A stretch of 64,000 nucleotides of DNA, taken from the NCBI GenBank assembly GCA_965649825.1, contig OZ287706.1:876001-940000 (forward strand), given 5' to 3'. This DNA comes from Penicillus capitatus (Eukaryota > Plantae > Chlorophyta). Numbering within the stretch: the first letter of the stretch is position 1; each line of letters begins with the position of its first letter. The translations under genes and the position numbers were made by a program. Below are positions 1-58,540 of this stretch, piece by piece. The notes under the pieces were generated by a model that saw only the letters and a program-made list of their open reading frames with translations, had not been told where the DNA came from and did not search any database.

Positions 1-2196
1 TCAGTGTTGCCGCATGGGTGCCTTCCAACGAACCTTCGTGGCGCCCATTTCGCAAGTGGCATCAGCAGAAGCTCGACGTCTCGGAAGTCGCATGGGGCAC
101 CACCACACGGCGACATATGCTCGCCAGTTGCAGTCTGGACGGGACGATCATCATCTGGGATGTCGAACGGGGAGAGACCTGTCACATCATTACCGGCCAC
201 AAGAATATGGTCAAGGGCGTGGCATGGGATCCACTCGGTCAGTTCCTCGCGAGTCAGGCCGATGCCGAAGGAGTCTTCATTTGGCGGACCTCGGACTGGA
301 AGTGCATCCAACAGATCTCGGAGCCGTTCAAAGAGGCCGTCGATCTGTCGGATCACTTGAGACTGTCATGGTCGCCGAACGGGATGTATCTCACTGGCGT
401 CCAGGCGCACGTCCTGCCTCAGCCTTATGTCGCCGTCCTGAGTCGAGATCGATGGAATGTCGAGTTCTGTATTGTGGGCCACCGTTCGGGTGTGTCTATT
501 TCGAAATGGAATCCGCGTTTCTTTCACCCTCGTGGCAGCAAGGACGCGATGGAATCGGATTCGGCTAAGCTGGCGATGTGTCTATGCCTTGGCAGTCTGG
601 ATCGATCGTTTAGTCTGTGGCTGCAGACCGAGGAGCGTCCCATTCTCCATATGGACGGCTTCTTCGAGAATCGCATATCGGACATTGCATGGAGCGCCGA
701 TGGTTACACGTGTCTGGTTGCATCGCGAGACGGTTGTGTGGCGCTCTGTAACTTTACGGAGGAGGAATTGGGAGCGGCAGCCTCGCATCAAGTCTCCCCC
801 ATGGACGTTTTCCCATCTTCTTCCAAAATGCCGGTGGCTGAGAACCTCAACCTGTGGATGCTGGAACAGAACCGCGGTGCAGCTGCGCCTTCCGTGGAGC
901 CCCAGGAGAAGAGAGGACGATTGGAGGCAGAGCCTGGTGTTCCCGAAATGCAATCAAAGCGACAGAAGAAAGTGAGTGGCAACGAGGTGCTCCTTTCGCG
1001 CATGACCCTTGAATCCACACCGCCCCCTCCGCTAAGACTTGCCTCGAAGCCGACATCTGTGCAGCAGCTGCCGAAGGAGAGCCTTCGCGGGAAGGAGAGA
1101 CGAAACAAGACGTCGTTTCTGCATTTCTGTGGCAGAAGGGAGATGCCAGATGGATCGTCGTCGGATGTTCAGCTGGCTGTGGAGAATGCCATGAGCAACA
1201 AACAGTGCACCATTGTGTGCACCGAGGGATCGAATGAAGTGTGGAGAGATGAGATTTCAGACAGAGCAGTGGCCGTCGCTGGAAATCTGAAATTCAGCGT
1301 CGTTGCGACAAACGCTTCGTCTCTTCATGTCGTGTGCTCGTCGTCTATAGGACGTTCTGCTCAATGAGATGCTGTTGTAGGTGTTTGACGAGGTGGGCAT
1401 GTATCTGATACCTTCTTTGCAGCTTCCTTCGTCCATCTCACTCCTACAGGCCGATGACGAATGGCGTCTTATGGCGTTGACCAAGTGTGGAGAGCTGAGT
1501 CTCTGGCATCTACAGACAAGGCGCCTTGTCTGTCGCGCCTCTGTCTGCTCGCTCTGCAAGGAAGCCCAACGTGGGGTCTTTTCTTAGCATCCTTCACCGA
1601 ATGCAGGTGTTTGTGTGTGCAGTGTCAACCATCCACTTTAGCTCCAACTCCTTGCCAATTGCCGTGCTTTCGGACGGGCATGCTTATCTCTACAATACTT
1701 CCCTCGAAGCATGGACCCTCATTTCAGATCCATCACAGAGACAGACCGGTCATCAAGCAGCGCAGATGGATACAGGTAAGCCATCACAGTGATCATTCTC
1801 AAAGACAGCGAACGATTTGTTTGTCGACTAGATGAGACGAGCGATATTGAACTCGATGCATTATCCTTGCATGCCAGTCAGGCAGATGTGAAGCATCATC
1901 TGGAACAGGGAATCATGAACGCGATCGAGCTGCAGTCCCCAACAGACTATCGCAAGTGGACGCTGGCTTACGTCCGTTTCCTGATCTCTCGTGCCACACG
2001 ATGCCATTCCGTCACCAAGGACGAGGAGACGAAGCTCCGAAAGATCTGCATGGATCTACTGCAGGGACGAAACGGAGAGATGCTGGGAGGGGAGCCCGTC
2101 TCTTTTCTCCGTCAAGACATCCTCCCAGAGATCATGCGATCGCGCGATCTACAGCGACTGGCCGAAGAGATCTGGGACTGGATAGAACGTCTGTAA
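1..2196 (+). CDS. HIRA: Histone chaperone HIRA (WD40 repeats plus Hira C-terminal domain), 5' end outside window, multi-exon
   Basis: WD40 repeats GHKNMVKGVAWDPLGQFLASQAD, SWSPNG, DIAWSADG; C-terminal HLEQGIMNAIELQSPTDYRKWTLAYVRFL matches the Hira domain; short introns (e.g. 1329-1380). Confidence 0.9.
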
Positions 2197-2327
2197 ACCC
2201 CTCCTGCATAGATTTCAAACACTCTCGTCTGTTCAAAAAACATCACCCGCAAACACCCGCACAGCAAAGTGCTTATAAACCCATCCATCTCTCAATCAAA
2301 AAAATGCGCACGTAATGGATCGAAAAC

Positions 2328-3593
2328 TTAGAGGTCGTAAACGATCTCGACCATGTGTCCGGTGTATCCGCGTGAGTAACACGCAATTGTCGTTCCTCCT
2401 GTCACCACGCATGATGGCTTTTCGATCATGGCATAGGAAGAGGAGAACCAGTCCGACCAAGAATTGTCGACGAACGACTTGCGCATGAGAGTACGATCGA
2501 CACCGATCAGAAAACAGTGTATCGCCTCGTCTTCGATTGCAATACATTCCGGAGCGGACACGAAGCTGCCGCCGAGATCCTCCCATTCCTCCCACTCCTC
2601 TTCCACAAAGGCTCGGTGCATGAGCTGATTGCCGACGCCAAGGACGAAGATGTCGGCACGATCGTAGTCCCAGCTCGTCACGGAGATGCGATGCTTTCCC
2701 ATTCCACCCGCTCCCGGCTGCATTTTCCATTCTCCCCCGAAAACCCACATCTCATGCGCCACAGAGTTGTCGGATGCCAAGGCGAAACAGTCTTCGGCAT
2801 CGCCATCCCCGCGTTCGGTGCATGTCGGAGGTGATGACATACCCTCCAGCTGGAGCTTCTTTGGTGGTTCCCATTTGCCATAGCGCGAACGGTCCACATA
2901 CCAAAGCGAATTGTCCAATGCCCGATAGAAGCAGGTAACACCTCCGCTGGCACGCATAAAGACAGACGGCACTTCCAGTGCCATGGCATTCTCGATCGTC
3001 TCCCATTCCGTCCATTCACCGCCTCTGATCATTCTGGTCATCAAATGGTTCGACTGGTTCAAGGTCATGAGGGTGAATTTGTTGCTAGACTTGGCCACAG
3101 GAATCACTTCATCGCGTACTTTTCCTTTACTGTCGATTGAATTCTGCGGTGCACCGTCCTTTGTCTTCTTGTGGATAACCGTCTGCGTCTCATAGTTGAC
3201 GTAGAAGCAGTCCACTTGTCCTCTTTTGAAAGAAACACAGTTCGGCAGAGACGAGAGGAGATCGCCGGTGATGAGTTCACAGGATTTCACTGCCGGGTCT
3301 TTCGCCTCGTTGCTGAACGAGGCACGGGCATGATGAAGAGACGCGAGCGGAATCTTCTTCGGACGATGTTCAAGAGCGCAGGGGCAGCAGTTTTCGCGAG
3401 TGGCTCGACGATCCACCTCGGCTTCCTCCAAAACGCAAGGACAGCAGAACTCTCCGTTTTTCAAGGCCTTGGCGAGGAGGAGGTCGTTCCGTGTGACCGC
3501 TTCATGTTCGGTGTAGCCGAACGATACAACTGCAAAGAACAGAACGGCGCAGACACACGCCAGACACGGGCTGCAGATGAAGTTGGTACGCAT
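2328..3593 (-). CDS. Secreted beta-propeller lectin-like protein (PLL/fucose-lectin-type repeats), intronless
   Basis: N-terminal hydrophobic signal peptide; repeats such as SVTSWDYDRADIFVLGVGNQLMHRAFVEEEWEEWEDLGGSFVSAP resemble PLL-type blades. Confidence 0.65.
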   Translation of the reverse strand: MRTNFICSPCLACVCAVLFFAVVSFGYTEHEAVTRNDLLLAKALKNGEFCCPCVLEEAEVDRRATRENCCPCALEHRPKKIPLASLHHARASFSNEAKDPAVKSCELITGDLLSSLPNCVSFKRGQVDCFYVNYETQTVIHKKTKDGAPQNSIDSKGKVRDEVIPVAKSSNKFTLMTLNQSNHLMTRMIRGGEWTEWETIENAMALEVPSVFMRASGGVTCFYRALDNSLWYVDRSRYGKWEPPKKLQLEGMSSPPTCTERGDGDAEDCFALASDNSVAHEMWVFGGEWKMQPGAGGMGKHRISVTSWDYDRADIFVLGVGNQLMHRAFVEEEWEEWEDLGGSFVSAPECIAIEDEAIHCFLIGVDRTLMRKSFVDNSWSDWFSSSYAMIEKPSCVVTGGTTIACYSRGYTGHMVEIVYDL

Positions 3594-3973
3594 GGCTAAA
3601 AAGCACAGGTCCTCAGAAGAGCAGTTAACAAACGACGTATATATAGGCGGCTCCTTGCCTCTTTGGGATCAAGCGCGTCAAGCAACGGGCGTTTGTGGAC
3701 TGCAAAGGCATATCGGAACGAAGGGTCTTTCGCGTGGGCCACGTATTCATTATTGAATTGTACGCGTTTGATGGATTGGCCGATGGAGAAAGACCCAAAG
3801 AGGCGACGTTTAGGAAATGGCAGTCAGATGATCCGTTAGATCCAAAAGACGAGACGGGATCGGTACATGCAACAGGTTTTTTTTGAGACAAACCTCAACG
3901 AAATCAACTGCATTGACCTTCGGGCAGAGGCCTGTCCTCCACGACGTCACAGCATTTCGTCTTCTGGCTGTCG

Positions 3974-6937
3974 ATGGATGCAAATACCGTACGAAAGCCC
4001 TCGCGCAAGCGCGAAGCCGAGCCATCTGCGGGCCACGGTGGCAGTTGGTCCCGCTACTTCGACAACAAAAACGCCAAGTTCCGAAGGCAGTTTCGGAATG
4101 AAGAACTGGAACGGTTCCATCTCGGAGGACAGGAAAAGACATCGCTGTTCACCGGCATCACGATCTTCGTCAATGGACACACCGTGCCATCGCAACAGGA
4201 GCTCAGACATCTGATGGCTTTACATGGAGGAGGATTCGAGATCTACGACAACCGTCCTCCTGTCACACACCTCATCTGCAGTCAATTGCCACTCGCTAAG
4301 ATCCGCCAGCTCCGAAAAGAAAAGTGCCCGTGCTCTATCGTAAACGCCGTCTGACTGGGGGGATCGCATCGCTGCAGGAATTCGGTTCCGGTCGTGCGGC
4401 CGGAGTGGATCACTGCGTCGATCGATGCAGGAGAGGTGCTGCCCGTGGAGGACTTTGCCCTCGAGCAGATCCAGGATCCCCGGGATCGACGCCTCGATGC
4501 GTTTCTGATGAGCCATGACGATCCGCAAGAGGAAGCAGAGATGACAGTGGACATGCCTCCGGAGGGAGATGCCGAAAAAGAGACAGCCTATTTCAAGAAT
4601 GCTGATCTGACGCCGAGCGCTTTCATCCGTAGCTACTTTGAACATTCGAGGCTTCATTTCATCGGCACCTGGAAGCTGCGCATCGAAGGCTTCCTGCAAC
4701 AGCAGAGGAACCGGGGGCCCAAACCTGCCAAAACAGGTGCCTCTCGGAAACCCCGACCAAATGCTGCACGGCCTTATTGACAGGAGACAGACAGATCGTG
4801 CACATCGACATGGACTGTTTCTTCGCGTCCGTGGCTTTGCTGACGCGGCCGGAACTGAGAGACGTTCCTTTCGTGGTGTGCCATTCCAGCAACAGGAACG
4901 GCACAGCAGAGATCTCGTGTGCAAACTACCCGGCTCGTCGATTCGGAATTCGTGCTGGATCCTTCATCTCGTCTGCCCTGGAGAAGTGCCCGGCACTGAA
5001 AGTCGTCCCCTATCAGTTCCAGCAGTATCACGAAATTTCAGAACAGGCACTCAGAGCGCGTTCCGTTCGACAGTGCGACCGAACGGACGTCTGTTAGGTG
5101 TACGGAATTCTGTCGAGTTACAGTGCGCGTGTCGAGCCAGTATCGTGTGACGAAGCGTACCTTGATGTGACGGGACTGGGAGACCCTGAAGAGTTGGCAC
5201 GGCGCATCCGATGCGAGATCTACGACACGACGCGGTGCCCAGCCAGTGCCGGAATTGGACCGAACAAGCTCCTGGCCAAGATGGCGACGTCCAAGGCCAA
5301 ACCCGACGGGCAGTATCGCGTTCTGAGCGCCGAGATTTCGGCCTTCCTCTGCGAAGTCCCCCTTCACGACATTCCAGGCATTGCTGTCACATCGCGTGAT
5401 TCGCCTGTCGATGATCGAGCACCTAGGCATCGGATGGTCGCTGACAGAGAAGCTCCGAGCAGAAGGAATCGAAACGACGGCGCAGGTGATGGAGAGATCC
5501 GAGAAGTGGCTGATCGATGCGTTCGGCGAAAAGACAGGAAGGATGATGTGGAGAGCATCACATGGGATTGACGCAGCGGCCGTCCAACTGCCGAAGGTGT
5601 GAAGTCGTGGCGGCAGGATCGGCTCACGCGACGTGGGGTTCCTGGCAGACGCGCAAGTCCGTTTGCGCCGAATGCAACTGGGGTATCCGAATCCACAGGG
5701 TCGAAGATGTGCGGAGCTATCTACAGGAGATTCTGGCCGAAGTGCTGCACCGAATGTCTTTTCTGCGTCTCAAAGGACGATGCGTCTCGCTGAAGGTGCG
5801 TGACAAAACACCGAACGTTGTGGATGTATCGCGATGTGACAGGTGCGAGTACGACAGGAAGACGCGCCAGTGTGTCCGCGAAAGTTTCTGGGATGCGGAG
5901 CGTGTGACCATTACAGTCGCAGTCACACCTTGGATCAGTACACAGACCGTCCAGAGATTCTGTTGCAGCATGTCTGGCAGCTGTTTCTGCGCATGGAGAT
6001 TCCTGTCGCTGACATTCGAGGTCTCGGCATTGGGGTGAGCTGTGTTCACAGGGGGCAACGATGGTGTCGATTTTCTGTGCCGTTGTCAGATTTCGAAACT
6101 CGACAGCGAAAGAGATGCATCGCAGAGATTGTTGCCTGAGCTCAAGCCCGTCGACCAGGGCACGAAGTCGGATCTCCGACCTCAATTCGCCGTTCCGATC
6201 GATCGTGGAAAGAAGCGGAAAGCAAAGTCGAAGGGCAGCAGATCGCGTGCTCCGATCGTTCTGCGCTCCGTCAGAGTCGTTCAACCAGATGGTCTTGTCC
6301 TGGCCGATGTCTGACGTCTTGTCCCGACGTCGTTCTTATCGTGCGTGATTTGAGTAGGTGGATGAGAGTGTGCTGGAAGCTTTGCCGGTCGAGTTGAGAC
6401 GGGAGATCATTGAGACGATCCCACTGGAACGTAACAATCTCTTTGTGGCGGGTAACGACACGCGGGACACGAAGAGACAGAAGACGGTGACGGAGGCGGC
6501 GGAGAGCAAGAAGCATCCTGTCATTTCAAGTCGCGTCACCTGAGGGATGCCGATCTCCGTGAGTCCGAGCGCTTGTAGATGTCGCATCGATCGAAGAACT
6601 GATCTGCCGCGGGTGTGAATCGCGAATTCCATCTTTCGTCGCCGCCAAGCTGGTCGCATGGCTCAAAGAAAGGGACGAAGTTCTGAAATGGCCGCCTGAA
6701 CGCGTAAAAGGGAAGACAGATTCTGCGTCGGACATGCTCTGTCGAGTGAAGGAATGGATTGACGGCGTTGACGAGATGCAGATGGGAATCGCGAGCTTAA
6801 CGCTGAAAGCGATTCGCAGAGTCGGCGATCGATATCCTGTTTCCTTTGGTACCTGCTGTCGAGACTTCGTCCGATCGATTCAAGACGACATCCGTCAGAA
6901 GTTTAACTACGAATTAGATCTGGATGTCTTTATGTGA
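3974..6937 (+). CDS. REV1: Y-family translesion polymerase REV1 (BRCT, IMS domain, ubiquitin-binding motif, C-terminal domain); start uncertain
   Basis: BRCT FTGITIFVNGHTVPSQQELR; HSRLHFIGTW; VHIDMDCFFASV; SCDEAYLD; SAGIGPNKLLAKMAT; UBM DESVLEALPVELRREI. Confidence 0.93.
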
Positions 6938-8627: not shown

Positions 8628-11555
8628 CTAAGGGAGCAAGCGGTAAGGTACACGCTTGTTTTTCAGCAGGCACATGACGACACGCAAGAACCGCAGACGA
8701 AACGTTTGGTACTAGTGAAAGCAAACTGGAATGACGAAACTCTTCGAGAGAGACTGAAAGAAAGACAATCACCTTCACCACCACTGCAAGTCACGGAATC
8801 AATTGAACGGGAGTTATTCCCGTTTAAGCAAAGCGGCTGGATTGTCTTCATGGCGGGGAGGAGTTTTGTGTTGGGACCCGTTCGGAGCCGACGGATCATC
8901 CTACCCTTCATATTTGCCGAGTCAACAGAATGGGCATCATTTTTTGACTGCACTCATAACAAGAATATCTTCTGCAAGGTCAAGCTGCACGCACATGGTA
9001 AGATCAGCGTGGTAATCTTCAACCAATCAGATACCCCACAACACGTCACCAGCAAGATGCGACTGTGTTGTGCTAAAGGTAACATTGATTCCATCGCCGA
9101 CGTCGACGGAATGGAATACCCGCTGAGAGTGAAGACCAAGCGTGTTAACAATGTTAGCGTCCTTACACCACTAGGCAAGGATGTTACAGTGGCTCGGCTG
9201 AGAGAAGAATTCCCGCTGGTTTTTTAGGACACCATTCGCCCGACGACCAGTAGGCTGTGGGACCTCAGGGTACGACAGAGATCTTTGTTGGCAAGGCGAG
9301 CCTAAGCCATGCTAGAGGGAGAACTACGTCTCAGATCTCACCAACGAAGAGATCTCAAAAGAGATCGATTCGCCACACAAGGAAGGTGTTATACGACCGT
9401 TGTCTGTGGCTGAGGCAATACACGCTGTCGTTAGCACCTTTAAACTTCATACGCAAACCGAATGGCAAGATCCGGCCCACCATTGACTTCCGCGACATCA
9501 ACACGTACCTGAAGGGAACGCAAGAGGGACCTTTATTCCGGTGTCCCACATCATCCAAAAGGTGGATCCCAAGTGGACCGTATACACCATCGTGGACATT
9601 GTCCACGGCTACGGATCCATCCCAATCGACGACGAGATTTCGCTTTTCTTTGCACTACATTGGAACGGCGTGACGTACGGCTTTCGGAGACTGCCGCAAG
9701 GCGTCAACGTCAGTCCAGAATTTTTTAATAACCGCATAACCCACATCCTACAAGGGTTGGATGTGATCCGATACTTCGACGGCATACTTATCGACGGCGA
9801 AACGGAGGAGGAACTCCTCAACAAGACTAAGCTTTTATTTAAACGTTTCGACGAATATGGCCTGACGATCAACTGTCAAAAGTGTGACTGGTTTGAAACA
9901 TCGGTAAGCTTTCTGGGTACCGAAATCAGTGGTGGGACGTTAAACCTCTACCACAGGGCTCAGGCTATACTCCAGAAGCTGCCAACTATCACATCACGTC
10001 ACGACGTACAAAAAGCCATGGGTCTGTGCCAGCAACTGGCACAGTACTGTTACAAATACGACGCGATCATCACGCAACTCAAGCCATTCCTGAAACGCGA
10101 ACACAATGACTACACCAAAGCTGACGAGATCTACAAAGACGCAGCTCAAACTCTATGCCTCAATACGTACCGACTGACGTTGGAAAGAAGGGGGCCATTC
10201 CATCTGTATACGGATTGGTGTGGTAACCCACTCAACCAGTTCGGATACGTATTGCTTAACTCGACCTTGCAACCTGTTCTCTTTGGCTCATTCACGACGA
10301 AACAGAGGGTCGGAAGTTTTCTGGGGGACTGATGGGGATAGTGCGGGCCTTGAAGGCATGTTACTTTGTGATCAAGCAGACGGAGGTATTCGTTTACTCC
10401 GACAACATGGCTACGGTCAATTGGCTCAAGGAGCCGACATTCCTGCACAAGTTCAAGGACCTCCGGATCCAGAGACAACATTGCTGGCTCCGGCACCACT
10501 TTTCCCACCATCGTCTCCACTTCTGTTTTGTAGAGGGGAAGGACAACGTGATTGCGGACCTTCTCAGCCGATGGAGGGACAACGCACCTGTCGAATTCCA
10601 CACCAAGAAGAAGCAACAGGGATATCAAGTGAACGCCGTATCCTACGCTCCGGAAGAACGGACCGAGCTCATCAAGAAAGCTCATGCAGGCCACTTCGGG
10701 GTAAGGACGACATTCCTGAACCTGCGGTCCGACGGAACCCGCTGGACGAACGACTTCAATGACGTGCGAGATTACGTCAATAACTGCGAGACGTGCCAAA
10801 TGTTTCGCAACCCACGGTCGGAGGTGGACTTGGGTATAATTGACAGTCCATCCCCGAACCACACACTGTGTCTAGACTTCATAGGACCGCTGAACCGTGG
10901 CAGCCACGGGTTTCGGTATATCGCTACCGGGATCGACGCTTTCACTAAGTTCGGCATGGGGCGCCCATGTAAGATGTGCTCGGCAGCACAGGCTATTAAG
11001 CTGGTACTCGAATGGGCACGAAACTTTGGGGCTCCACGAAGGATTCTATGCGACAACGGAAGCGCCTTCATTGCCAGGAGCTTCGAGAGTACCTGCGCAC
11101 AGCACGGAATAGACATTCTACACACCCCAACCTATTCCCACAAAAGCGCGGGCACTGTCGAGGCGTTCAACCGAAACCTCGTAAATCGACTTCGGAGGAT
11201 ATGGGCGGAAAAAGGGGGTGATTGGACGACACATGTGAGCACGAGCGTACATGAGATCAACCGAACGATCCATAGTACGACTCTGTTCTGTCCACAATAC
11301 CTTCTAACTGGCACACAACGAAACGGCACGATAACCAGTCCACAACATCTAGACACCGACCGAGGGCTAGCGTATCAACGAATAATTAAGGCACACCAGC
11401 AAAATAAGACAAGACACCACAAGAAAGTCAAGATCCGTCCCATTGAAGTGGGAGCGGAGGTCTCGTGGTACAACTCGAAGTTGGCCGACCGCCTCGACTC
11501 CAAACTCTACTCCAAATGGGTCTATCCTTGTGTGGTAGTGAAGGAACATAGTGAC

Positions 11556-11802
11556 TGTCGCCGAGCGATGTGACACTGCCTTGTTTTGTGAGGGTCAACC
11601 GTGCGAGGGGGTGCTGCCTGTCTTGTCAACGGCGTCTTGGGACGCCTTTCTCTGGCCCTGAGCACGAGCTGACTCACCTTTCTAGAAGGGTTACGTCAGC
11701 AGGCGACTATATAATGCAGAACCTGAACGTTGTTTCGCCTTGCTCCGAACACTGTAACAAGACTTCCGCTGTTATCGTTTAGTTCGGCGCCTCCGCGCGA
11801 CA
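11556..11802 (+). repeat. 5' LTR of element G
   Basis: Direct repeat of 13227-13473; TG...CA ends; TATA-like TATATAA; TGACTCA motif. Confidence 0.95.
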
Positions 11803-11958
11803 TGGTTTCGGAGCGTTGTTAAACGTTCCTCAGTTTGATCTCCGTCTAAGTGACGTTGCGTGTTTGCTGTGTGCATTACGCGCCTTTCTGAGTGGAAGTC
11901 GAGTCCTGTCTAGACACGTCTAGACGCACCTAGGAAATTCAAGGAAGCAGTAGCAAGG

Positions 11959-13161
11959 ATGAGTCAAGTACGACGAGAGAGAAGAACGGAGCAAGGTCAC
12001 GTAGAAGAGGGGTTTTACAATGCCACAGTTGTCGGGCCGAACCTGCTCAGTTGGCTTCATGAAGACGAGGGTTTATACCCGGAAGGACTTACCTTTCGCA
12101 GGGTACAGACGTGGCGTCGGGGTTACTCCGTCGACGTGCTCAAGGAAAGATACTTGTTGGAGGCGACGGAGCTGTGCGCTTTCTTCCGCTACATCTGTCC
12201 GAGGCTTCAAGAGAGACGGGACCTGCGAGGGGAGAACGAACACCTACGACGGCAGTTGGAGGGTGAGCGGCACAAGGCCTCCGAGGCGGCGAGAAGATTG
12301 CGCGAGGGAAAGGAGAAGATATACCAAAGGGCGACGACCCTTGACGCAGAGAAGGAGCAGCTGCGACAGCAGCTGCAGAGCGAACGACTGACCGCGTCTG
12401 AAGCACGGAAAGCATGTGCCGACGCAGCCCGGGAGAGCGAACGGTGGAAAGGGCTCCACGACGAGCTATACCGGGAGTTTGAGCAGGGACTGCAACAAAA
12501 CGCCTTGGCTGCGCAAGCATGGGAAGAAGTGAATGTGAAGAACGAACGGTTATCGGGGGCGAATGCGAGGCTGCAACAGGATCTTGCCGAGGCGCAGCAA
12601 GGCAGCGTCAAGGCACAGCAAGATGCAAACGAGGCACGCGTGGAAGCCTCCTCTCTCCATGAGAAGCTTAGAGAGACTGACGCCGCCTTCACAGAGGCGA
12701 AGAAAAAGTTTATTTCGGCACCTGATTTGGTGCCATGTCTACAGTCTTTGGCCGCCGAGGTGAAGACTCTGCAGGAAACCGTACGGACGAACGGCGAAAG
12801 GACGGCTGAGTTGATGACGACAAGACCGGCAGAAGGACGGAGAACCGTGAAGACGTTGCATCAGATGAAGCGCGTTTTGCACGACATTGGGCGGTTCCCG
12901 CGCCGACGACGGGCGAGAGCAACCGACGCGGCAGATGATGGCGGAGGTGCCATCAAGCGCGGTCGGATATGTTATGTGTGCCGATGCAAGGGGCATCTGG
13001 CCAAGGACTGTCCGCAAGCGCGGGTTAATGCGGTCGAGTCAGTGGATCCGACGATATCGGATGCGCAGCAGAGAGCGGGGGAACCAAACACAGAAGCATC
13101 ATCATCTTCGGGATGGACCATTTTCTCGGCGCTGCGACGATTCACCTCGGGCATAGACTGA
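11959..13161 (+). CDS. Gag-like protein of element G: long coiled coil plus CCHC zinc knuckle
   Basis: 400-aa uninterrupted ORF; ~200-aa helical E/A/R/Q-rich segment; CYVCRCKGHLAKDC knuckle. Confidence 0.85.
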   Translation: MSQVRRERRTEQGHVEEGFYNATVVGPNLLSWLHEDEGLYPEGLTFRRVQTWRRGYSVDVLKERYLLEATELCAFFRYICPRLQERRDLRGENEHLRRQLEGERHKASEAARRLREGKEKIYQRATTLDAEKEQLRQQLQSERLTASEARKACADAARESERWKGLHDELYREFEQGLQQNALAAQAWEEVNVKNERLSGANARLQQDLAEAQQGSVKAQQDANEARVEASSLHEKLRETDAAFTEAKKKFISAPDLVPCLQSLAAEVKTLQETVRTNGERTAELMTTRPAEGRRTVKTLHQMKRVLHDIGRFPRRRRARATDAADDGGGAIKRGRICYVCRCKGHLAKDCPQARVNAVESVDPTISDAQQRAGEPNTEASSSSGWTIFSALRRFTSGID

Positions 13162-13226
13162 TTTCATTCTGTTGTTTTCGTGGGGGCTTGCTTGCGTTTT
13201 TTTTCGGAGTTTGGCGGGAAGCGTGG

Positions 13227-13473
13227 TGTCGCCGAGCGATGTGACACTGCCTTGTTTTGTGAGGGTCAACCGTGCGAGGGGGTGCTGCCTGTCTTGTCAA
13301 CGGCGTCTTGGGACGCCTTTCTCTGGCCCTGAGCACGAGCTGACTCACCTTTCTAGAAGGGTTACGTCAGCAGGCGACTATATAATGCAGAACCTGAACG
13401 TTGTTTCGCCTTGCTCCGAACACTGTAACAAGACTTCCGCTGTTATCGTTTAGTTCGGCGCCTCCGCGCGACA
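13227..13473 (+). repeat. 3' LTR of element G
   Basis: Matches 11556-11802. Confidence 0.95.
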
Positions 13474-13571
13474 GTGACCACCGTTGGGATATCCGTATGC
13501 CCAACGGTTCGACGCTGCACAATGTCCATCGTGACTTCCTTCGGAGATTAGACAGAAGATAGGTGGGCCCA

Positions 13572-13898
13572 TGTCGTGTTAAGGCGTAGCGCTCGCGTTA
13601 ATGCGCTCATCTACCTACACTTGTGTCGATCTCCAGGTGACAGGTCGTAGGTTCTCCATACCTTCCCATCCACAAATAGACCCGCGGCTTCTATGTCACA
13701 GATTCCAAGCAGATTCCGGAATCTTCGAAGAATATTCGTTTGTGTTACTTAATATAGGCCCACGACCGTAATGCGACGCTACCCTATAAAAGCGTTGTAG
13801 ATGTACAGATCTTGTCTTTCGTTTGTAAGACTTTACGTTTCAAAGGTTTACGTGCGCCCACCGTTCAAATTGTTTCCATCTAAAAAACATACGCGACA
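13572..13898 (+). repeat. 3' LTR of element A
   Basis: Follows integrase stop and GATAGGTGGGCCCA; ends TGTCG/CGACA; homologous to 55713-56095 and 57596-57700. Confidence 0.85.
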
Positions 13899-13915
13899 CT
13901 AGCTAAGCTGTTTAC

Positions 13916-15007
13916 GTGATGTCGTGCGGCATGGCTTTCCTTAACGTTCTCGGAAAGGAAAGAATTGAACGCTTTGCTTTTGAGGTTGTCAAGGGCCATT
14001 TGACGGATGAAGTGAGAATAAGTTATGCTAGGTGGCTTCCTCGTAAGATAACGTATCCTCCCTTTACGGATTGCTCGTCAAGGTTTTTCGTTTCTCAAGT
14101 GATTCATTTGTGTAACCGGTGGTGTGCTCGGAATGTCAATTTTGGCAAACCGGGACCGGCGTCGAAGTTCGTATGCCGTCGGAAGGGTAGGGACGGAGTG
14201 CTAGTACCACGTACTTGGGCAGATTTTGTCGAAGCGCTCTGCGATGTCGCACAGCGAGGAGCTTTCTCTATCAATCCGGCGGCGACGTTTGAGCACCTTG
14301 CTCTAGCTGTGCTCTGCTTAGTTTACTGGTTGAAAAATAAAGGTGTAAACTTTCATACAGCCAGGCTAGTGAAGCAATTTACTAGTATGCTTTGCCAAGC
14401 TATCGAAGTAGCCCATCCGTATCTGCCTACCGAAGCAAACGAGAACGAAGGTGGCGAGGGAAGTGGGGAGCCGCAGCCGGTCGCCGTGCCGCAGCCGGTC
14501 GACGATGAGGATCCGGTCATCACGGACGAAGTTGGAGACACGATTATGGAAACAGAAAAGGCGACGTCTGGGGGCCGCGGTTCAAGACTCCGTAGTCGGG
14601 ACTTGTCTTACGAACAGGAAATGTCAAGGGGAAGAGAGGCAAAGCGCCGCTACAATCTTCGGAACACGCTGGCTCGAGTGGAACGGATGGCGAAGTTGAA
14701 AGAAGCAGAGGACGCAAAGTGGAAGGCGGACAATGAGGAGGAGGAGGTCACGGACGAAGATGGATACGCGAATATGGAAACAGAAGAGGTGACTTCTGGG
14801 AGTCGCGGTCCTAGACGTAGTCGGAGATTGTTTTACGAAGAGGAAACGTCAAGGGAAAGAGAGGCTAAGCGCCGGTACTGTCTTCGGAACACACAGGCTC
14901 GAGTAGAACGGATGGCGGGGTTGAAAGAAGCAGATGACGGAAAGCGGAAGGTCGACGATGGTGTTGGGAGTTCTTCTAGGGCCTCGCGGAAGAAATCAAG
15001 AAAGTAG
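13916..15007 (+). CDS. Orphan intronless protein with an internal duplication (RRYNLR/RRYCLR repeats)
   Basis: 363-aa ORF; two ~65-aa repeats METE...SRxREAKRRY(N/C)LRNTxARVERMAxLKEA(E/D)D; no family recognised. Confidence 0.6.
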   Translation: MMSCGMAFLNVLGKERIERFAFEVVKGHLTDEVRISYARWLPRKITYPPFTDCSSRFFVSQVIHLCNRWCARNVNFGKPGPASKFVCRRKGRDGVLVPRTWADFVEALCDVAQRGAFSINPAATFEHLALAVLCLVYWLKNKGVNFHTARLVKQFTSMLCQAIEVAHPYLPTEANENEGGEGSGEPQPVAVPQPVDDEDPVITDEVGDTIMETEKATSGGRGSRLRSRDLSYEQEMSRGREAKRRYNLRNTLARVERMAKLKEAEDAKWKADNEEEEVTDEDGYANMETEEVTSGSRGPRRSRRLFYEEETSREREAKRRYCLRNTQARVERMAGLKEADDGKRKVDDGVGSSSRASRKKSRK

Positions 15008-15582
15008 GTGACCGTTGAAGCGGTCTGGCGCGCGGATTAGGCTTCGTCGGAGGTTGTATCGGGCTTTTTCGTGTGGAAGGCGGAACTTTGTCGAGATGGG
15101 CAGGTGAGGAGAGAAGCCAATGTCAAGGGTCGGTACAAGATGATACGGAGTTGGCGATCTAATGCGTTGGTTGGCGATGTGTGTTGACATAGCGAACACG
15201 GATGGCGAAATGCGCGATGAGGCCGAAGCACGACGACTAAGGAATGCGAGATGTGGAGAGCGTGGGTTGGTCGTGGCAAAGAGAACGAGGATTGCTGTGG
15301 GGCCACGTTCCTTGCTTGACCTTGGCGTGCTGACCTAGAGTTCTGCGATCGCCATGGCTCGATGCGCTTTTTTTGCTTTTGTGTGTCTTCGTTGGCAAAG
15401 CGGCCTTTTTCCCGCGCCGAGCTTCCGTTTTTTCCTTTTCGGTGTCTGTCGCAGGCTTGTTGTTTTTTCTTTCTAGTTTCCGTTGTTTGTTCTTTATCGG
15501 TTTTGGTCGCCGTTGCAAACACACTTCCGGTTTTTTGTATAGTTTTCTTTTCCTAAAGAGCCGTGGTCCGTGGCTATCTTGT

Positions 15583-15683
15583 GTCGGTTTCGCCAAGAGC
15601 ATGGCTTCGTAGTCGGTCTGAGGGGGACGTCGGTTTCGCCAAGAGCATGGCTTCGTAGTCGGTCTGAGGGGGACGTCGGTTTC
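15583..15683. repeat. 46-bp tandem repeat, ~2.2 copies
   Basis: GTCGGTTTCGCCAAGAGCATGGCTTCGTAGTCGGTCTGAGGGGGAC at 15583 and 15629. Confidence 0.9.
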
Positions 15684-16105
15684 CATACGGGAGAACAATA
15701 GGAGGTATGGTATGTCGCTCCACCGGGTTCGTCAAAGGTGGTCGGTCAAGTGCGGAGGCGTTGGGGGTTGTCTAGGGGACGAGGGAAAGGTAGCGCGGGC
15801 AGACGGTTAGATCGCCAAGGGACAGGTTTGTGCCGTTTGTCCTGGGATGTCGATGAGACTGGAAAGCGCCCATTCGAGACAAAGTTTCGGCTGTTTTGTT
15901 AGTCAGGGGGCAACGGAAGAGACGTGTTCATCAGTCGAATGGTTGCATGGGTTCGCGACAGGCATGCATTGGATAAAAGTATCGTCCGTGAGGTATTCAG
16001 GCAAGGGTTTTGCGTGTCCTTTGATCAAAAGTTCACTGCCGGGCTTGATGCCGTGGTTTTTTTTTCACTGCCAAGACGAGTTCGATCCGCATAAATCGAA
16101 CTGGC

Positions 16106-16265
16106 TGTTTGCCTGCCTGTTGCCGGGGCCGCATGAGCCCCCCTTGTTTGCCTGCCTGTTGCCGGGGCCGCATGAGCCCCCCTTGTTTGCCTGCCTGTTG
16201 CCGGGGCCGCATGAGCCCCCCTTGTTTGCCTGCCTGTTGCCGGGGCCGCATGAGCCCCCCTTGTT
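16106..16265. repeat. 39-bp perfect tandem repeat, 4 copies, each with a GGGGC/GCCCC stem
   Basis: Unit TGTTTGCCTGCCTGTTGCCGGGGCCGCATGAGCCCCCTT. Confidence 0.92.
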
Positions 16266-16877: not shown

Positions 16878-18300
16878 TGTCGCCGGACGGGTCGGACGAA
16901 AACAGCAAACAGCGGAAGTCCTTTTACAACTGTTGGAGCAAGGCAAAGTAGCGTTCCGACTATCCGTTTTATACCCCAGAAGCGATGTGACCTGCCTAGG
17001 CAGGTGAGTCATCTTTGCGCCAGAACCAAAGAATAGCGCCCCAGATGACTCAACCTGCAACCCCCCAAGACGTGAACCCATCGGAAACGAGGCAGTCACA
17101 TCGACACGCCAAATCTTGGCGACACCACGCTTCCCGCCAACTCCGACGATCACCCTAGTAATATAACCGCAAATGTTCTGCATGAAATGATCCCACTCTT
17201 CGAGAACTTCCATTTTTCCACACCATCCATAATCTCGAACCCCGCGGCTCCGCAGTTAGGTGAGGACCTGTCCACGACGAATGGAGTGCATGGCGCTTTC
17301 TATGAGGTTCATACGCCAGAATCCATTGTCCTGTCTGTAGCGGCGGCTTGCTCGAATATTTTCGAAGGTATGCTTCCCTGTCCCTCTGTCGCCCAGCCGC
17401 TCTCCTCTGTCGAGCGAGGTGCATGGCCTGCTCCCACTCCATGTCCGTCATCAAGCTGCCGTCACGTCGTCTTCCCCAGCACAATTCCATGGGTGTGAAA
17501 CCCGTGGTCTCGCAAATCCCTTGGTTGAAAATCTCCTCCAACGCATGGATAGAGATGTCCTCGGCAGACTTCCAGAGTATCTTGGCCAATCTTGTCTTCA
17601 CGTTTCCCACCTGTCGCTCTGCTGCACCATTGCACCAAGGTGCGTGACTTGGCGACCACCGTTGCTTGATCCCATGCCCCTCACAGAATGCTCGAACCCC
17701 TCCGCCGATGAATTCAGCTCCTCTATCTGCCATGAACATACGAATATGTCCATGTTTCCATGATAAAGCTTGTTCCCATCGCTTCAATCCTCGCAGGACC
17801 GTTCTTTCCGTGGGAGTCTTAGCCACATGTAAGTGCGTGATGCGACTGAAACCGTCGACCAACACCAGAAGGACTCGTTTTCCTCGCCCTCGACTCAAAG
17901 TAATAGGCCCCAGAAAATCTCCGAAGACAACATCGTTTAGGTGAGTTATCTCCATCCCCGTCCATGGTTCCCGGTGCTCCAAGCCACGAAAATGTTGGCA
18001 ATTGGGACACTGCTCCACATACTGGAACACCTCTTTCCTTGCTCCCGGCCAAACCGGGCCATCCCGTTTCAGATGTTGCCACGTCCTTTCTGCGTGCCAG
18101 TGACCCTGATGTGCCTTTTCCAGACGGCTCCTCACCACGTCAACGAGAGGCCGCTGCTGAAGCATAACTGCTCCTACCATCTTCCCCGCCTTCTGCTGGC
18201 TTTTGCTCCGACTCAGGTAATCCGCCACTTGGTTGATTGTGCCAGGTACATACTCAAACTGTGCTTGAGGGAAGTTTCCCCACAGCCATCCCATGAGTCG
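16878..18300 (-). mobile_element. Ty3/gypsy element B, 3' half only (RNase H end, integrase, PPT, 247-bp 3' LTR at 16878-17124)
   Basis: LTR TGTCGCC...GGCGACA on minus strand; tract CGGAGTTGGCGGGAAGCGTGG directly upstream of it. Confidence 0.92.
17155..18294 (-). CDS. Retroviral-type integrase (intact) with RNase H C-terminus, element B
   Basis: NQVADYLSR; HQGHW...CPNC zinc finger; FGDFLGP, ADRGAEF, AAERQV catalytic DDE; SWTGPH GPY/F-like tail. Confidence 0.92.
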   Translation of the reverse strand: MGWLWGNFPQAQFEYVPGTINQVADYLSRSKSQQKAGKMVGAVMLQQRPLVDVVRSRLEKAHQGHWHAERTWQHLKRDGPVWPGARKEVFQYVEQCPNCQHFRGLEHREPWTGMEITHLNDVVFGDFLGPITLSRGRGKRVLLVLVDGFSRITHLHVAKTPTERTVLRGLKRWEQALSWKHGHIRMFMADRGAEFIGGGVRAFCEGHGIKQRWSPSHAPWCNGAAERQVGNVKTRLAKILWKSAEDISIHALEEIFNQGICETTGFTPMELCWGRRRDGSLMTDMEWEQAMHLARQRRAAGRQRDREAYLRKYSSKPPLQTGQWILAYEPHRKRHALHSSWTGPHLTAEPRGSRLWMVWKNGSSRRVGSFHAEHLRLYY

Positions 18301-21300
18301 AGAACATCAACATTCGCCCCATGATCGATGAGAACCTGTGGAGTTACAGAGCTTGTTAACAGTGGAGCATATCTGAAATATACCGTAACGGTCTGCGCGT
18401 CACCGAGTCCCACGGCTAGAAGAAGCGGAGTGCTTCCATTCTTGTTGGCGGCATTGACATCTGCACCACGATCGATGAGAGCCTATGGAACAGTACGAAT
18501 TAATGGACTGTTGCCGAGGATCGGAGTTCACCGTAGCCATCTCTGGGTGGCCGAGTTTCGCGACTTGATGAAGCGGAGTGAATCCTTCTTTATCAATCGC
18601 ATCGACAAACGCTCCATGATTGAGCAAAGCCTGAGATGATAATATAAACGGATCGGATAAGTCAGGACTGATGTGGAGCTTGCCATAGCGATCTCCGTGT
18701 GGTTATAACGGGATGCTGCCAAGAGTGACGTCCATCCTTCCTTATGAACAGCGTCGACATCGACGTTGTGGTCGATGAGAGCCTAGGCAACGATACGATG
18801 TCAGACAGAAACTCGGAATAGATGAAGAATTCGCCATGGCGATTTCTGTTCGGCCATAGCGCGCGGCAGATAGAAGAGGAGCCCATCCGTCATTGTCGAC
18901 ATGGTTAACATTTGCTCCGTGATCCATCAGCGCCTAAAACAGCACGAATTCCAGGGCGGTCTCAAACTCAATGTACAATCGACCTTGGCGAGTTCTACAT
19001 GTCCGGCATAAGTAGCCATCAATAGTGATGTCCGTCCTGTATTCGACGCAACATTGACGTTTGCCCCGAGATCGATGAGTCTCTGTGAAATGATGCCATA
19101 CATCTTATAGAAGAATAGATATGGGATGGTTAGTTCACCATGGCAATCTCTGTGAAACTAAAGAACGTTGCCAGGTAAAGCAGAGTTGATCCATCGCTCA
19201 AGCGAATGTCTAGATCTGCTCCGTGTTCCATGAGAAGCTAAAAAATGATACGGCAGAAAGATAACAGAGAAACGTGAGAGGCAGCTCACCGTAGCGATCT
19301 CTGTGTAGCCATACCGTGCTGCATGATGAAGTACTGTCCATCTATTCTGTTTGACATGATTGACATCTGCTCCATGCGCCAAGAGAGTCTAAGCAGCTTT
19401 GAAGGCTGCTTTCATGAACGAGGACGACCTGTCGTTTACCTGCAAGATATTGATGTACCGACCATAAGCCGCCCTTTGAAGTAGCGTCTCGCCATTGATC
19501 GCATTGGCATCGACGGCTGCTCCTTGAGAAAGAAGGATCTACCGGTTTGCTCGTTAGGAAAGAGATCGGACAGGGCAGGACATACCTCGACGACTTGCAG
19601 ATGACCTTGCCATGCCGCATCGTGCAAAGGCACGTTTCCATAGTTATCGACGGCATTGACATCGACGCCGCAATCCATAAGAACCTTGACAACGACGCTG
19701 ACAAAAACGCCGAAAGGAAGAGAAATGACATGCTCGCACCTTAACTGTCGCACTCTTTCCTTTGAAAGAGGCGAGATGCAACGCCGTTTTCCCTTGAAAA
19801 TTAGCGACAGAGACACCTGCCCCGTTTTCGATCAGTGCCTGTCCGGAATCTCATTCCTTGTATCGATCTCGATCGAAAGGTGCAAGACATACCGTCACGA
19901 CTGTAGTCTCTCCTCTTTTGGCCGCTTTGTGTAATGGTGTTTCCCCGTGTTTGTCTGTTGCGCTCGCATTTGCATCACGATCCAACAGCCACTGTCAAGA
20001 TGTCCATGACAATCATCGCAGGTGATCGATCGGCCAAACCTTAACGGTTTTTAGATCTCCGTTTCGCGCCGCCACCGACAATGCCGTCCAGCCATCGATG
20101 CTATCCGATCGTTCCTTGTTAGCGTTCTCTTCGACGAGCAGCTACATCGAACATGCAGTGGACGGGAACAGACGCTTCGCCGATCGATGTTCACCTTTGT
20201 AATCTCAAAGCGACCACTGTTCGTTGCCATTAATAGCGGCGTCCATCCCGTATTATCCACACCTTCCACATTCGCTCCCTTTTCGATCAGCACCTGAACA
20301 GACACCTTCGGGATTAAGATTGCCGCTCAGTGCACGCGCCTTCGCAATTCTCAGTTGTCCAGTCTTCGCTGCGATCAGAAGAGGCGTCTGTCCCTCATCG
20401 TCGCGCGCATCCAAATCGGCTCCGTTCTCGGCAAGAAGCTAATGGCCAAGTGATGGGAAGGGTGAAAACGATGGAACGGAGGAGGTACTTCCGCGATCTG
20501 CATTTGTCCACTCTCGGCTGCAATGTGCAAAGCAGTCCACTCGCTGCGATCCCTTGCGTTCACATCAGCACCGGCCTCGATCAGCACCTACTTACTGGAC
20601 AGTCATCGACAAAAAGAGAACTGGAAACTCGAATGCTCGCCTTGGCGACGTCTGACTGTTCCGTTCGCGCTGCTTTGTGTAACGGAGTTTCTCGAATCCG
20701 ATCGGTTGTATTGACATTTGCTCCTCGTTCCACGAGTATCTATCGTTGCCTCGATACCGAACGACGAATCGATCTGGAAGCTCACCTCGACAATCTTTCG
20801 ATGGCCGTTCTTCGACGCTAAGCTCAAAGGCGTCTGTCCATCGATATCGACGACATTCACTTCGGCTTTCGAATTCAGAAGAAACTGCAGAGTGCACAGA
20901 AGTATCGATTTAGCATGTCGAAGAGGATTAGCGAAAGTGATTCGGCTGAGGCGTTTGGTCGGTAAGCCATTTGCGCATTGTCGACGAAAGATTCGCTTCT
21001 TCTGTCATCGACGCACGTTTCGATGGCATTCTTCTCTCGCGAGAAACGATGGAGTGTCACACGACTCGCCTTTGTCGCTGATTGGGATCCGTACGCCGCA
21101 GCGACGTGCAGAGGAGTCAGAAGGTCTCTGTTCTGCCGGCCGATCTCTGCACCGTTCTCGACGAGAATCTGCGAACCAATAGGATGTCGCGCAAACAGAC
21201 ACACAAATCTGGTGGCAGCATCACCTTGGCACTGTCTATCGCATCGAACGCTGCCGCCCAGTGAAGCAATGTCGAGCCCTTGACCAAAGGCGTATGCTTG

Positions 21301-42901: not shown

Positions 42902-43112
42902 TGCCATGTGCAGGACTGCGCCGATCTGCATCGAGGCAGATCGACGGCAGACTCATGCACATGGCAGTAGCTATGGCCTCTTGAGTCGCCTCCATGTGCA
43001 GGACTGCGCCGATCTGCATCGAGGCAGATCGACGGCAGACTCATGCACATGGAGTAGCTACGTACAGGTCTGCCGTCGATCTGCATCGAGGCAGATCGAC
43101 GGCAGACTCATG
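42902..43112. repeat. Three tandem long hairpins sharing a CGATCTGC-ATCGAG-GCAGATCG core
   Basis: Copies at ~42902, ~42991 and ~43062; third has a perfect 17-bp stem (43068-43084 / 43091-43107). Confidence 0.9.
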
Positions 43113-43236
43113 TACACGCCGTCGTACGCTCGACTCGCTCTCCACTCTGGAGACTGCATCCTCCGTCCTGCGCGCAGAGTGAGGAGAGGGATCCCTGGCA
43201 GAAAGGATGGGCACCTCTTGGCAAACCTCTTCGGTC

Positions 43237-58530: not shown

Positions 58531-58540
58531 GAGCATCGCC

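Follow-up and report, generated by a model that had tools for sequence, protein, structure and literature searches.

The window analysed here, a 64,000-nucleotide stretch of Penicillus capitatus DNA, carries a short LTR retrotransposon that has recently moved and yet lacks pol. How does such an element move, and what does its single protein contribute? With a probability of roughly 0.78, it belongs to a lineage of short (~1.4–1.9 kb) non-autonomous LTR retrotransposons that is old and still active, and whose members have their own protein and are mobilised in trans by gypsy-like partners.

Anatomy and insertion site of the element

The features discussed below are as follows.
9382–13571 (+): older gypsy-like element hit by the insertion (Pfam RVT_1, rve, and Integrase_H2C2; tblastn map)
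11551–11555 (+): left target-site duplication GTGAC, single copy in the paralogue (56189–56193)
11556–11802 (+): 5′ LTR, 247 bp, TG..CA ends, 100% identical to the 3′ LTR
11708–11714 (+): TATATAA within the 5′ LTR (LTR alignments)
11803–11814 (+): primer-binding site (PBS) TGGTTTCGGAGC, directly abutting the 5′ LTR, invariant in 8/8 pol-less loci
11803–11958 (+): conserved 5′ leader (alignment and consensus fold of 7 leaders)
11959–13161 (+): single intact ORF, 400 aa (ORF list, Pfam, family alignment, AlphaFold2)
13203–13226 (+): TTCGGAG motif followed by the polypurine tract (PPT), abutting the 3′ LTR
13227–13473 (+): 3′ LTR, 247 bp, 0 differences in 247 bp from the 5′ LTR
13474–13478 (+): right target-site duplication GTGAC, matching the left copy
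16878–18318 (−): 3′ fragment of an autonomous gypsy-like relative (homology to integrase, PPT, and LTR)
56054–56419 (−): paralogous integrase end of the older element, uninterrupted target, with a single GTCAC at 56189–56193

The element occupies 11556–13473 (+) and is 1,918 bp long. Its LTRs start with TGTCGCC and finish with GCGACA, and LTR alignments reveal a conserved CCTTGCTC ~30 nt downstream of TATATAA. The PPT, GGCGGGAAGCGTGG, is positioned at 13213–13226, directly before the 3′ LTR. The identical 247-bp LTRs, the GTGAC duplication, the PBS, the PPT, and the one 400-aa ORF had all been reported in an earlier note and are confirmed here. The note had also stated that there is no room for protease (PR), reverse transcriptase (RT), or integrase (IN). 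In accordance, the internal region spans just 1,424 bp, and a Pfam scan of the ORF (E up to 1) detects neither protease nor RT, RNase H, or integrase.

The insertion interrupts an older gypsy-like element, in which RT lies at 9382–10329 and integrase lies at 10332–11555 and resumes at 13479–13562. As read, the interrupted integrase ORF extends over 10332–11573 and contains rve and Integrase_H2C2 domains (Pfam). The older element has its own PPT at ~13549–13571, and its own LTR begins at 13572 (TGTCGTG). When the two flanks are joined with one GTGAC, they align gap-free to the minus-strand paralogue at ~56100–56290, with 134/156 positions identical. The empty site previously proposed near 56.2 kb therefore stands, but it is paralogous (82–86% identity), not allelic. 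A tblastn search of the window with the family proteins, seeking the gag of the older element, finds no relative besides the ORF itself. Elsewhere in the window, the COX3 gene is alphaproteobacterial.

A second copy of the element, at locus L001, matches it with 99.8% identity across 1,920 bp. It has different flanks and its own target-site duplication, AACAC. Together with the identical LTRs, this copy bears out the earlier description of the element as young.

A compact pol-less family under purifying selection

The copy search suggested in the earlier note yields, in addition to the L001 copy, a family of 32 protein clusters (227–505 aa; large protein database search), in which the sole protein longer than 406 aa is an LTR read-through. 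Eight loci were examined (the window element, L001, L002, L003, L004, L005, L010, and L011), and the LTR–PBS–leader–ORF–PPT–LTR layout without pol is present at 8/8, although the most distant locus, L011, retains only a truncated 3′ LTR, and a frameshift precedes the zinc knuckle in its ORF. Family elements are compact, about 1.4–1.9 kb. The identity of the ORF falls to 59% and ~42% within the sample, and L010 and L011, which come from other samples, show 29–30% protein identity. No family ORF is fused to PR or RT among 5.8 billion and 1.84 billion proteins, and neither a leader DNA pattern nor a protein-pattern scan finds relatives in the JGI metagenomes.

The leader contains a hairpin, GGAGC..GYTCC, and the motif CTCCGTCTnnnTGACGT. 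The palindrome GTCTAGAC occurs in it twice, at 11908–11915 and 11918–11925. The first ~60 nt of the leader are near-invariant, even between loci with ORFs ~30% identical.

The earlier note had allowed that the element might be a single internal-deletion derivative of a full element whose gag is the same ORF. It is not such a derivative, given the pol-less layout at every locus examined, the lack of PR or RT fusions, and the gag of the closest autonomous relative, L008, which is not detectably the same protein (see below). Moreover, the architecture and the leader have persisted through deep divergence, so a deletion, if there was one, would be ancient and not the source of the window copy.

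The ORF is under purifying selection across element lineages with different LTRs, with dN/dS of 0.25–0.47 in all 15 pairs for which dS could be estimated. Compared with L002, the window element is a mosaic, with dS falling from 0.98 (N-terminal part) through 0.42 (coil) to 0.015 (C-terminal half), a pattern that fits template switching between co-packaged RNAs.

LTR elements are known to pick up cellular ORFs, and the knuckle is the only recognisable retroelement domain of the protein. The ORF might thus be a captured host gene encoding a cellular coiled-coil and CCHC protein, a passenger between LTRs with no role in transposition. However, all homologues with enough flanking DNA are in the same LTR–PBS–leader context (8/8 loci), no LTR-free cellular homologue is seen, and a protein profile search beyond the family matches zinc knuckles only. 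The purifying selection that persists through changes of LTR is likewise hard to reconcile with a passenger, and we consider this explanation very improbable.

A coiled-coil and zinc-knuckle protein

The same fold of the 400-aa protein emerges from two AlphaFold2 runs: a small beta domain, one long helix, two short helices, and a knuckle. The beta domain is predicted at aa 18–67 (12010–12159), and the long helix of ~180 residues is predicted at aa 69–249 (12163–12705) with pLDDT above 90. The hydrophobic periodicity of the long helix peaks at 3.5 residues. The two short helices, predicted within aa 257–311, are conserved; confidence is low for the segment aa 250–335. The CCHC knuckle CYVCRCKGHLAKDC is located at aa 338–351 (12970–13011) and has the pattern CX2CX4HX4C. 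Its Pfam zf-CCHC match is sub-threshold (E = 0.0079, below the gathering score), but the knuckle is nearly invariant in 40 family sequences. The C-terminal tail is also conserved (SSGWxIFSxxRRFTSGID), and the motifs HFIxAPDL and QMKRVLHDI are kept, along with the knuckle, down to ~25% identity.

The two-lobed all-helical capsid fold (CA NTD and CTD) appears in neither AlphaFold2 model. Pfam gives no capsid or gag family in the ORF at E up to 1, Foldseek gives no match with E < 0.3 (best E = 1.5 against PDB and 0.38 against BFVD), and a PDB profile search returns knuckle or generic coiled-coil matches only. These results agree with the earlier observation that a capsid domain is absent, and they count against a standard capsid fold. 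The N-terminal beta domain repeatedly draws COMM-domain chains among its non-significant Foldseek matches (E > 1), which is a lead only.

The earlier note had likened the protein to a LINE ORF1p-type RNA chaperone. In LINE-1 ORF1p and other non-LTR ORF1 proteins, a coiled coil that varies in length and serves oligomerisation precedes a nucleic-acid-binding module, and some of these proteins use CCHC knuckles. The likeness holds for the architecture only, a coiled coil followed by a nucleic-acid-binding module. The window protein has no RRM or CTD and matches ORF1p in neither sequence nor fold (Pfam, Foldseek, and PDB profiles), and its carrier is an LTR element with PBS, PPT, a 5-bp duplication, and no second ORF (ORF2), whereas non-LTR elements are target-primed.

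The closest parallel in element structure is TR-GAG. Elements of this group are <4 kb, occur in at least two copies, and have LTRs, PBS, PPT, and a 5-bp target duplication; their single ORF includes a CCHC-type zinc finger, and PR, RT, RNase H, and IN are missing (Chaparro et al. 2015, PMC4350172). The plant TR-GAG elements have no closely matching autonomous partner, so trans-mobilisation is assumed, and similarity to GAG capsid domains (GyDB, Pfam UBN2) was the criterion that defined their ORFs (PMC4350172). The window element resembles them in its size of 1,918 bp, single ORF, CCHC knuckle, lack of pol and of a closely matching autonomous partner, further copies, and LTR, PBS, PPT, and 5-bp duplication. 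It differs in that its ORF has no Pfam capsid similarity (UBN2 or Retrotrans_gag) and, by prediction, encodes a protein dominated by a single long helix, in that its lineage is deep (protein identity down to ~25–30%) with a conserved leader, and in that its host is not a land plant. A search of the TR-GAG literature returned plant elements only; to our knowledge, gag-only elements have been described so far only in plants.

Non-autonomous LTR elements are usually viewed as decayed copies that keep cis signals only. TRIM, LARD, and the BARE-2/BARE-1 pair are non-autonomous systems in which the cis signals (LTR ends, PBS, and PPT) are kept and the proteins of a partner are used (PMC4350172). The window element is likewise non-autonomous with LTR ends, PBS, and PPT. 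However, TRIM and LARD have no ORF and no internal coding capacity, whereas the window element keeps one intact, selected protein. BARE-2 keeps pol without a working gag, whereas the window element is the opposite, one protein and no pol. The pol-less family thus retains one small protein under purifying selection while its LTRs have diverged. If this protein is needed for movement, a retrotransposon parasite can carry its own RNA-handling factor and yet depend on the enzymes of a partner.

Candidate partners and priming

The minus-strand fragment near 17 kb contains an RNase H end and integrase at 18318–17158 (integrase 17158–18294), followed by the PPT GGCGGGAAGCGTGG at 17138–17125 and a 247-bp LTR, the same length as that of the window element, at 17124–16878. 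Its LTR is homologous to the pol-less LTRs, 78.8% identical to the L003 type and 61.7% to the window element. A near-complete autonomous element was obtained only at L008, on a contig with 2x coverage. Its PBS and PPT are identical to those of the window element, its LTR starts with TGTCG, and it encodes gag-PR in one ORF (with a frameshift in gag), RT-RNase H, and integrase. TTCGGAG and the PPT sequence follow the integrase in both the 17-kb element and L008. These Ty3/gypsy-like elements therefore share with the window element the PBS 12-mer, the PPT, and homologous LTRs with TGTCG...ACA ends. They differ in that they encode gag-PR, RT-RNase H, and IN, in that the L008 leader departs from the conserved leader of the pol-less family beyond the PBS, and in that the L008 gag has no detectable homology to the 400-aa ORF (hhalign probability 8.5%). 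L007 has no PBS. Integrase homologues are few and mostly fragments, and among them no intact autonomous copy has LTRs near that of the window element; the best is the 17-kb LTR at 62%, and its 79% match concerns the L003 lineage only. The PPT and LTR start of the L011 pol-less element resemble those of the other autonomous family in the window (13549–13580).

The shared PBS, PPT, and homologous LTRs agree with the earlier proposal that the element is mobilised in trans; the trans step itself we infer from them. The LTR would drive transcription of the element, and the RNA would carry a PBS for a host tRNA, the strongly conserved leader, and the PPT. It would encode one protein, comprising the N-terminal beta domain, a coiled coil of variable length, the conserved helical segment, a basic linker, one CCHC knuckle, and the conserved tail. 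RT, RNase H, and integrase would be supplied in trans by Ty3/gypsy-like elements of the same genome, whose PBS and PPT are the same and whose LTR ends are homologous. The protein most likely oligomerises via its coiled coil and binds or chaperones the RNA of the element via the knuckle and basic linker, and would thus act as an RNA-coating chaperone. Binding of its own RNA would favour the transcript of the element for packaging and reverse transcription. The lineage is probably ancient and TR-GAG-like, with RT and integrase borrowed from gypsy-like relatives.

The autonomous elements of these genomes also have no Pfam-recognisable gag domain, so the 400-aa ORF may be a very diverged gag of the lineage. 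The family would then have originated as a gag-retaining internal deletion and would behave like a plant TR-GAG, and its protein would co-assemble with the Gag or Gag-Pol of the partner into ordinary particles. Consistent with this, coiled-coil stretches also occur in the L008 gag-PR, a CX2CX4HX4C knuckle precedes its protease, and the cis signals are common to the pol-less and autonomous elements. In addition, hhalign gives one weak collinear match, EVKTLQ..QMKRVLHDIGRYPRRRR against EMKNLQ..QMPRAAEEKEVYPPQRRR, ~20 residues before the knuckle in both proteins. However, the hhalign probability is low, neither large protein database joins the ORF to PR or RT, and no capsid-like helical bundle is present in either model. 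We regard a diverged gag as possible but doubtful. The family also hints that no recognisable capsid domain is present in the Gag of the gypsy-like elements of the host lineage.

A further reading, which we put forward tentatively, is that these elements form a separate and long-lived class of "satellite" LTR retrotransposons. Its non-capsid coiled-coil and zinc-knuckle protein would coat RNA in an ORF1p-like manner, mark its own RNA, perhaps via the leader, and deliver it to the Pol of several gypsy-like partners, and LTRs, PBS, and PPT would be exchanged between lineages and their currently active partner. If so, LTR and non-LTR retroelements have converged on an ORF1p-style ribonucleoprotein strategy. 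The role of the ORF is testable, since the family is compact (1.4–1.9 kb) with clear cis signals and several natural variants and the protein is likely easy to express.

The PBS always begins with TGG, after 0–3 spacer bases. The 12-mer TGGTTTCGGAGC is also found in the autonomous elements L008, L006, and L011 and at 39291 on the minus strand of the window. Its presence in further, unrelated LTR-element families argues for a host tRNA primer. A host tRNA fitting the PBS would end with ...GCUCCGAAACCA. ARAGORN and Rfam give no matching tRNA in ~190 kb of host DNA and no clear tRNA in the window, and a regex search finds none with the ends UUCGGAG...CUCCGAA. ARAGORN makes two calls with undetermined anticodon, in L001 and L003, of which Rfam (window and four loci) confirms only the L003 call, a tRNA-Met with an intron that does not match the PBS.

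Priming could instead be of the Tf1 type, with the transcript folding its 5′ end back on the PBS in place of a tRNA primer. In the window copy, GCTCCGAA (11743–11750), ~30 nt downstream of the TATA box, complements TTCGGAGC of the PBS, and the transcript would start at GCUCCGAA. However, the LTR segment is degenerate in relatives (GCTTCGAA, GCTCTGTAA, GCTCCAAC, and GCTCATTG) while the PBS is invariant and has a constant TGG start, and the sharing of the PBS across unrelated families is as expected of a host tRNA 3′ end. Self-priming is thus quite unlikely, and we reject it as the main mechanism because its 8-nt complement decays in relatives whereas the PBS is invariant and crosses element families.

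Insertion site, family and selection

The element (window 11556-13473, 1,918 bp) has the anatomy of an LTR retrotransposon and interrupts an older gypsy-like element within its integrase ORF. The relevant features are:

9541-10332, RVT_1 of the older gypsy-like element (Pfam)
10332-11573, rve and Integrase_H2C2 of the same element (Pfam)
11551-11555 and 13474-13478, target duplication GTGAC on both flanks of the inserted element
11556-11802, + strand, 5' LTR, direct repeat of 247 bp
11959-13161, + strand, single intact ORF of 400 aa, between the primer-binding site (PBS) and the polypurine tract (PPT)
13227-13473, + strand, 3' LTR, direct repeat of 247 bp
56054-56419, - strand, diverged paralogue of the interrupted integrase end

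The two LTRs start with TGTCGCC, end with GCGACA, and show no differences. The PBS, TGGTTTCGGAGC, adjoins the 5' LTR, and the PPT, GGCGGGAAGCGTGG, lies immediately 5' of the 3' LTR. The internal region is only 1,424 bp and is therefore too small for protease, RT, or integrase, none of which is found by Pfam in the element. When the flanks are fused at one GTGAC, they align with the paralogue without a gap (134/156 identical), revealing the target before the interruption. The earlier note had read much of this from the sequence alone, namely identical 247-bp LTRs with a GTGAC duplication, PBS-like and PPT-like tracts, one 400-aa ORF with no space for pol, and an empty site in a related copy at about 56 kb, and each observation holds.

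A protein nearly identical to that of the element is encoded on a separate contig, L001. The L001 copy is 99.8% identical to the element over 1,920 bp and has other flanks, an identical LTR pair, and its own target duplication, AACAC, indicating that the family moved very recently, as had been proposed. Four further loci, L002-L005, each carry the same PBS, one ORF, and a PPT within about 1.5-1.8 kb, and their LTR pairs are 98-100% identical. Protein identity to the element's ORF is 77% for L002, 59% for L003, and 42% for L004. In a collection of 5.8 billion proteins the ORF has 32 relatives (227-505 aa), none with a pol domain; the lone 505-aa relative is a read-through from the upstream LTR. 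Searched as a profile against 1.84 billion representatives, the conserved C-terminal half matches the family and a small number of short, free-standing distant relatives (182-318 aa); all other matches are to zinc knuckles. Two distant relatives have DNA context, P0042 (30% identity; ERZ27276715) and P0049 (29%; ERZ26696514), and both loci consist of LTR, TGGTTTCGGAG, conserved leader, ORF, and LTR, without pol. The pol-less layout is thus family-wide and, judged from its presence in relatives at 29-30% protein identity, ancient, which rules out a one-off internal-deletion derivative, the case that the earlier note named against its own reading. In L011, one of these two distant loci, the 3' LTR is truncated and a frameshift interrupts the ORF upstream of the knuckle. 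Scans of JGI metagenomes with a leader DNA pattern and with a protein pattern find no family relatives.

Pairwise dN/dS of the ORF is 0.25-0.47 (Nei-Gojobori, all pairs with measurable dS), and by this measure the ORF is kept by selection. Between the element and L002, dS falls from 0.98 in the N-terminal 85 codons through 0.42 in the coil to 0.015 in the C-terminal 185 codons. On these values the element is a mosaic relative to L002 and copies recombine, as expected if templates switch between co-packaged RNAs.

Cis signals and candidate autonomous partners

Further LTR-element families (L006, L011, and window (-) 39291) carry the PBS 12-mer as well, which is consistent with a host tRNA primer. 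The window copy is exact (39280-39291 (-), TGGTTTCGGAGC, preceded by ...CACAC) and lies away from any recognisable gag or pol, perhaps as the remnant of a further LTR element.

The leader, from PBS to start codon, aligns well across seven elements and is conserved even between elements with about 30% protein identity. Its first ~60 nt are nearly invariant and comprise TGGTTTCGGAGC, a GGAGC...GYTCC hairpin, and CTCCGTCTnnnTGACGT. In the element, the leader also contains the palindrome GTCTAGAC twice. L008, a contig with an autonomous element, shares none of the family leader past the PBS. We can only guess that the leader acts in packaging or dimerisation.

Two shorter motifs recur in pol-less and autonomous elements alike. 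The heptamer TTCGGAG, the PBS core, reappears a few bases upstream of the PPT (window 13203-13209 and 17147-17141 (-); L008 4879-4885; L011 4567-4573 and 6983-6989), with the first T replaced (GTCGGAG) in the 17-kb copy; it might be a second primer-tRNA contact or a 5'-3' interaction site. TGTAA (11753-11757), located ~45 nt 3' of the TATA box, is conserved in every LTR examined and may be a polyadenylation signal, giving a very short R region.

The 17-kb copy (window 16878-18318 (-)) is a 3' fragment only of an autonomous gypsy-like relative, in which the integrase ORF is followed by TCGGAGTTGGCGGGAAGCGTGG and an LTR:

17155-18294, - strand, integrase ORF
17124-16878, - strand, LTR of 247 bp, starting TGTCGCC and ending GGCGACA

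Family LTRs align with this LTR along its length. With the L003-type pol-less LTR it shares 78.8% identity, and with the element's LTR 61.7%; identity among pol-less lineages, 62-69%, is below the former value. The closest integrase relative, at 68% identity, is on L008. Along this 6.6-kb contig the identical PBS 12-mer is followed by a gag-PR ORF, then by RT-RNase H and integrase, and finally by the identical PPT and the start of an LTR, TGTCG. Its gag (66-1903) is unusual: after a signal-peptide-like start, MQQRAWLRLFALFYLIASAAVIA, it contains a frameshift, coiled-coil stretches, and several hydrophobic, membrane-like segments, followed by CCHC knuckles (CNKCGRYHAGEC) and a DSG protease. In L011, the PPT and LTR start of the pol-less element (TTCGGAGATGGCAACGGGGGTTAGGTGGACCCA|TGTCGTGTTATCGCG) resemble those of the window's other autonomous family (TTCGGAGATTAGACAGAAGATAGGTGGGCCCA|TGTCGTGTTAAGGCG, 13543-13586), suggesting that separate pol-less lineages pair with separate partners.

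The encoded protein and its proposed role

Two AlphaFold2 runs, on alignments of 32 and 40 sequences, agree on the structured parts of the following architecture:

aa 18-67, three-stranded beta domain (AlphaFold2, pLDDT 82-90)
aa 69-249, single helix (AlphaFold2, pLDDT above 90)
aa 257-278 and 297-311, two short helices (AlphaFold2, low confidence)
between the short helices and the knuckle, basic linker
aa 338-351, zinc knuckle CX2CX4HX4C
SSGWxIFSxxRRxFTSGID, conserved though disordered tail

The hydrophobic periodicity of the long helix peaks at 3.5 residues, and its length differs among family members owing to indels. The short helices fall in the most conserved sequence (HFISAPDLVPCL... and KTLxQMKRVLHDIGRYP). 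The sole Pfam match of the ORF is a weak zf-CCHC. Neither Pfam, Foldseek (best E 1.5 in PDB and 0.38 in BFVD), nor a PDB profile search (just knuckles and generic coiled coils, every E above 0.003) gives a capsid or ORF1p match. The suspected lack of a capsid domain is thereby upheld. The suggested likeness to LINE ORF1p is confined to the combination of a coiled coil and a module that binds nucleic acid; the protein is outside the ORF1p family.

Plant TR-GAG elements are structurally closest to the element, sharing its size, its LTR, PBS, PPT, and target duplication, a single ORF, the lack of pol, and multiple copies (PMC4350172). However, their definition requires ORF similarity to GAG capsid domains, which the element's ORF does not have (PMC4350172). 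The TR-GAG literature found is on plants throughout.

The insertion is fresh, and the family-wide lack of pol, selection on the ORF, and cis signals in common with gypsy-like elements are established. We propose that the element's RNA would be primed by a host tRNA with the 3' end ...GCUCCGAAACCA, and that the Pol of an autonomous partner would reverse-transcribe and integrate it. The encoded protein would oligomerise via its coiled coil, and the knuckle and basic linker would bind or chaperone the RNA. As the chief alternative, the ORF could be this lineage's own gag, very diverged and co-assembling with the Gag of the partner. The autonomous gags of these genomes (L006, L008, and L011) likewise match no Pfam gag family, so the missing Pfam match is weak evidence alone; the structure prediction argues more strongly against a diverged gag. 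When the family profile is compared with the L008 gag, the only collinear match is a weak one immediately ahead of the knuckle (probability 8.5%).

Surrounding sequence

Left of about 57.7 kb the window carries eukaryotic genes, encoding a cenH3-like histone, trypsin, TTL, a WD40 HIR1/CAF1B-like protein, and a Y-family polymerase, and this part ends in an LTR fragment (about 57596-57700). The last 6.3 kb are alphaproteobacterial, as revealed by COX3:

57711-64000, bacterial cox-operon segment with heme o synthase (truncated at the junction), a Cox11-like gene, COX3 (59219-60184), SURF1, and an OmpA-type peptidoglycan-binding protein

Six alphaproteobacterial contigs from the same sample match this segment at about 97% identity, and among named proteins its COX3 is closest to those of Parvularculaceae, Hyphococcus, and Marinicaulis. 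Either the contig is chimeric, or bacterial DNA has entered a eukaryotic genome very recently.

The window has a counterpart in ENA, contig ctg340479_41x of ERZ25074695 (L009), from a long-read metagenome assembly with coverage varying between contigs. Window 8958-16161 is 99.97% identical to it (one mismatch and one gap in 7.2 kb), and by coordinates L009 would end near window 61,300, which suggests that the window derives from an assembly version that differs slightly.

On L003, four consecutive same-strand ORFs (841-5153) carry wybutosine-pathway domains (TYW3, Kelch TYW4-like, TRM5/TYW2, and JmjC/cupin TYW5-like) and may belong to a single multi-domain gene or form a cluster of genes in the host. 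Tandem-repeat blocks occupy window 14520-14951, 15583-15683, 16106-16265, and 42904-44421. The third consists of perfect repeats of a 39-bp unit that, within an ORF, translates as a repeated peptide; at 43.5-44.4 kb lies a complex array of ~250-bp units.
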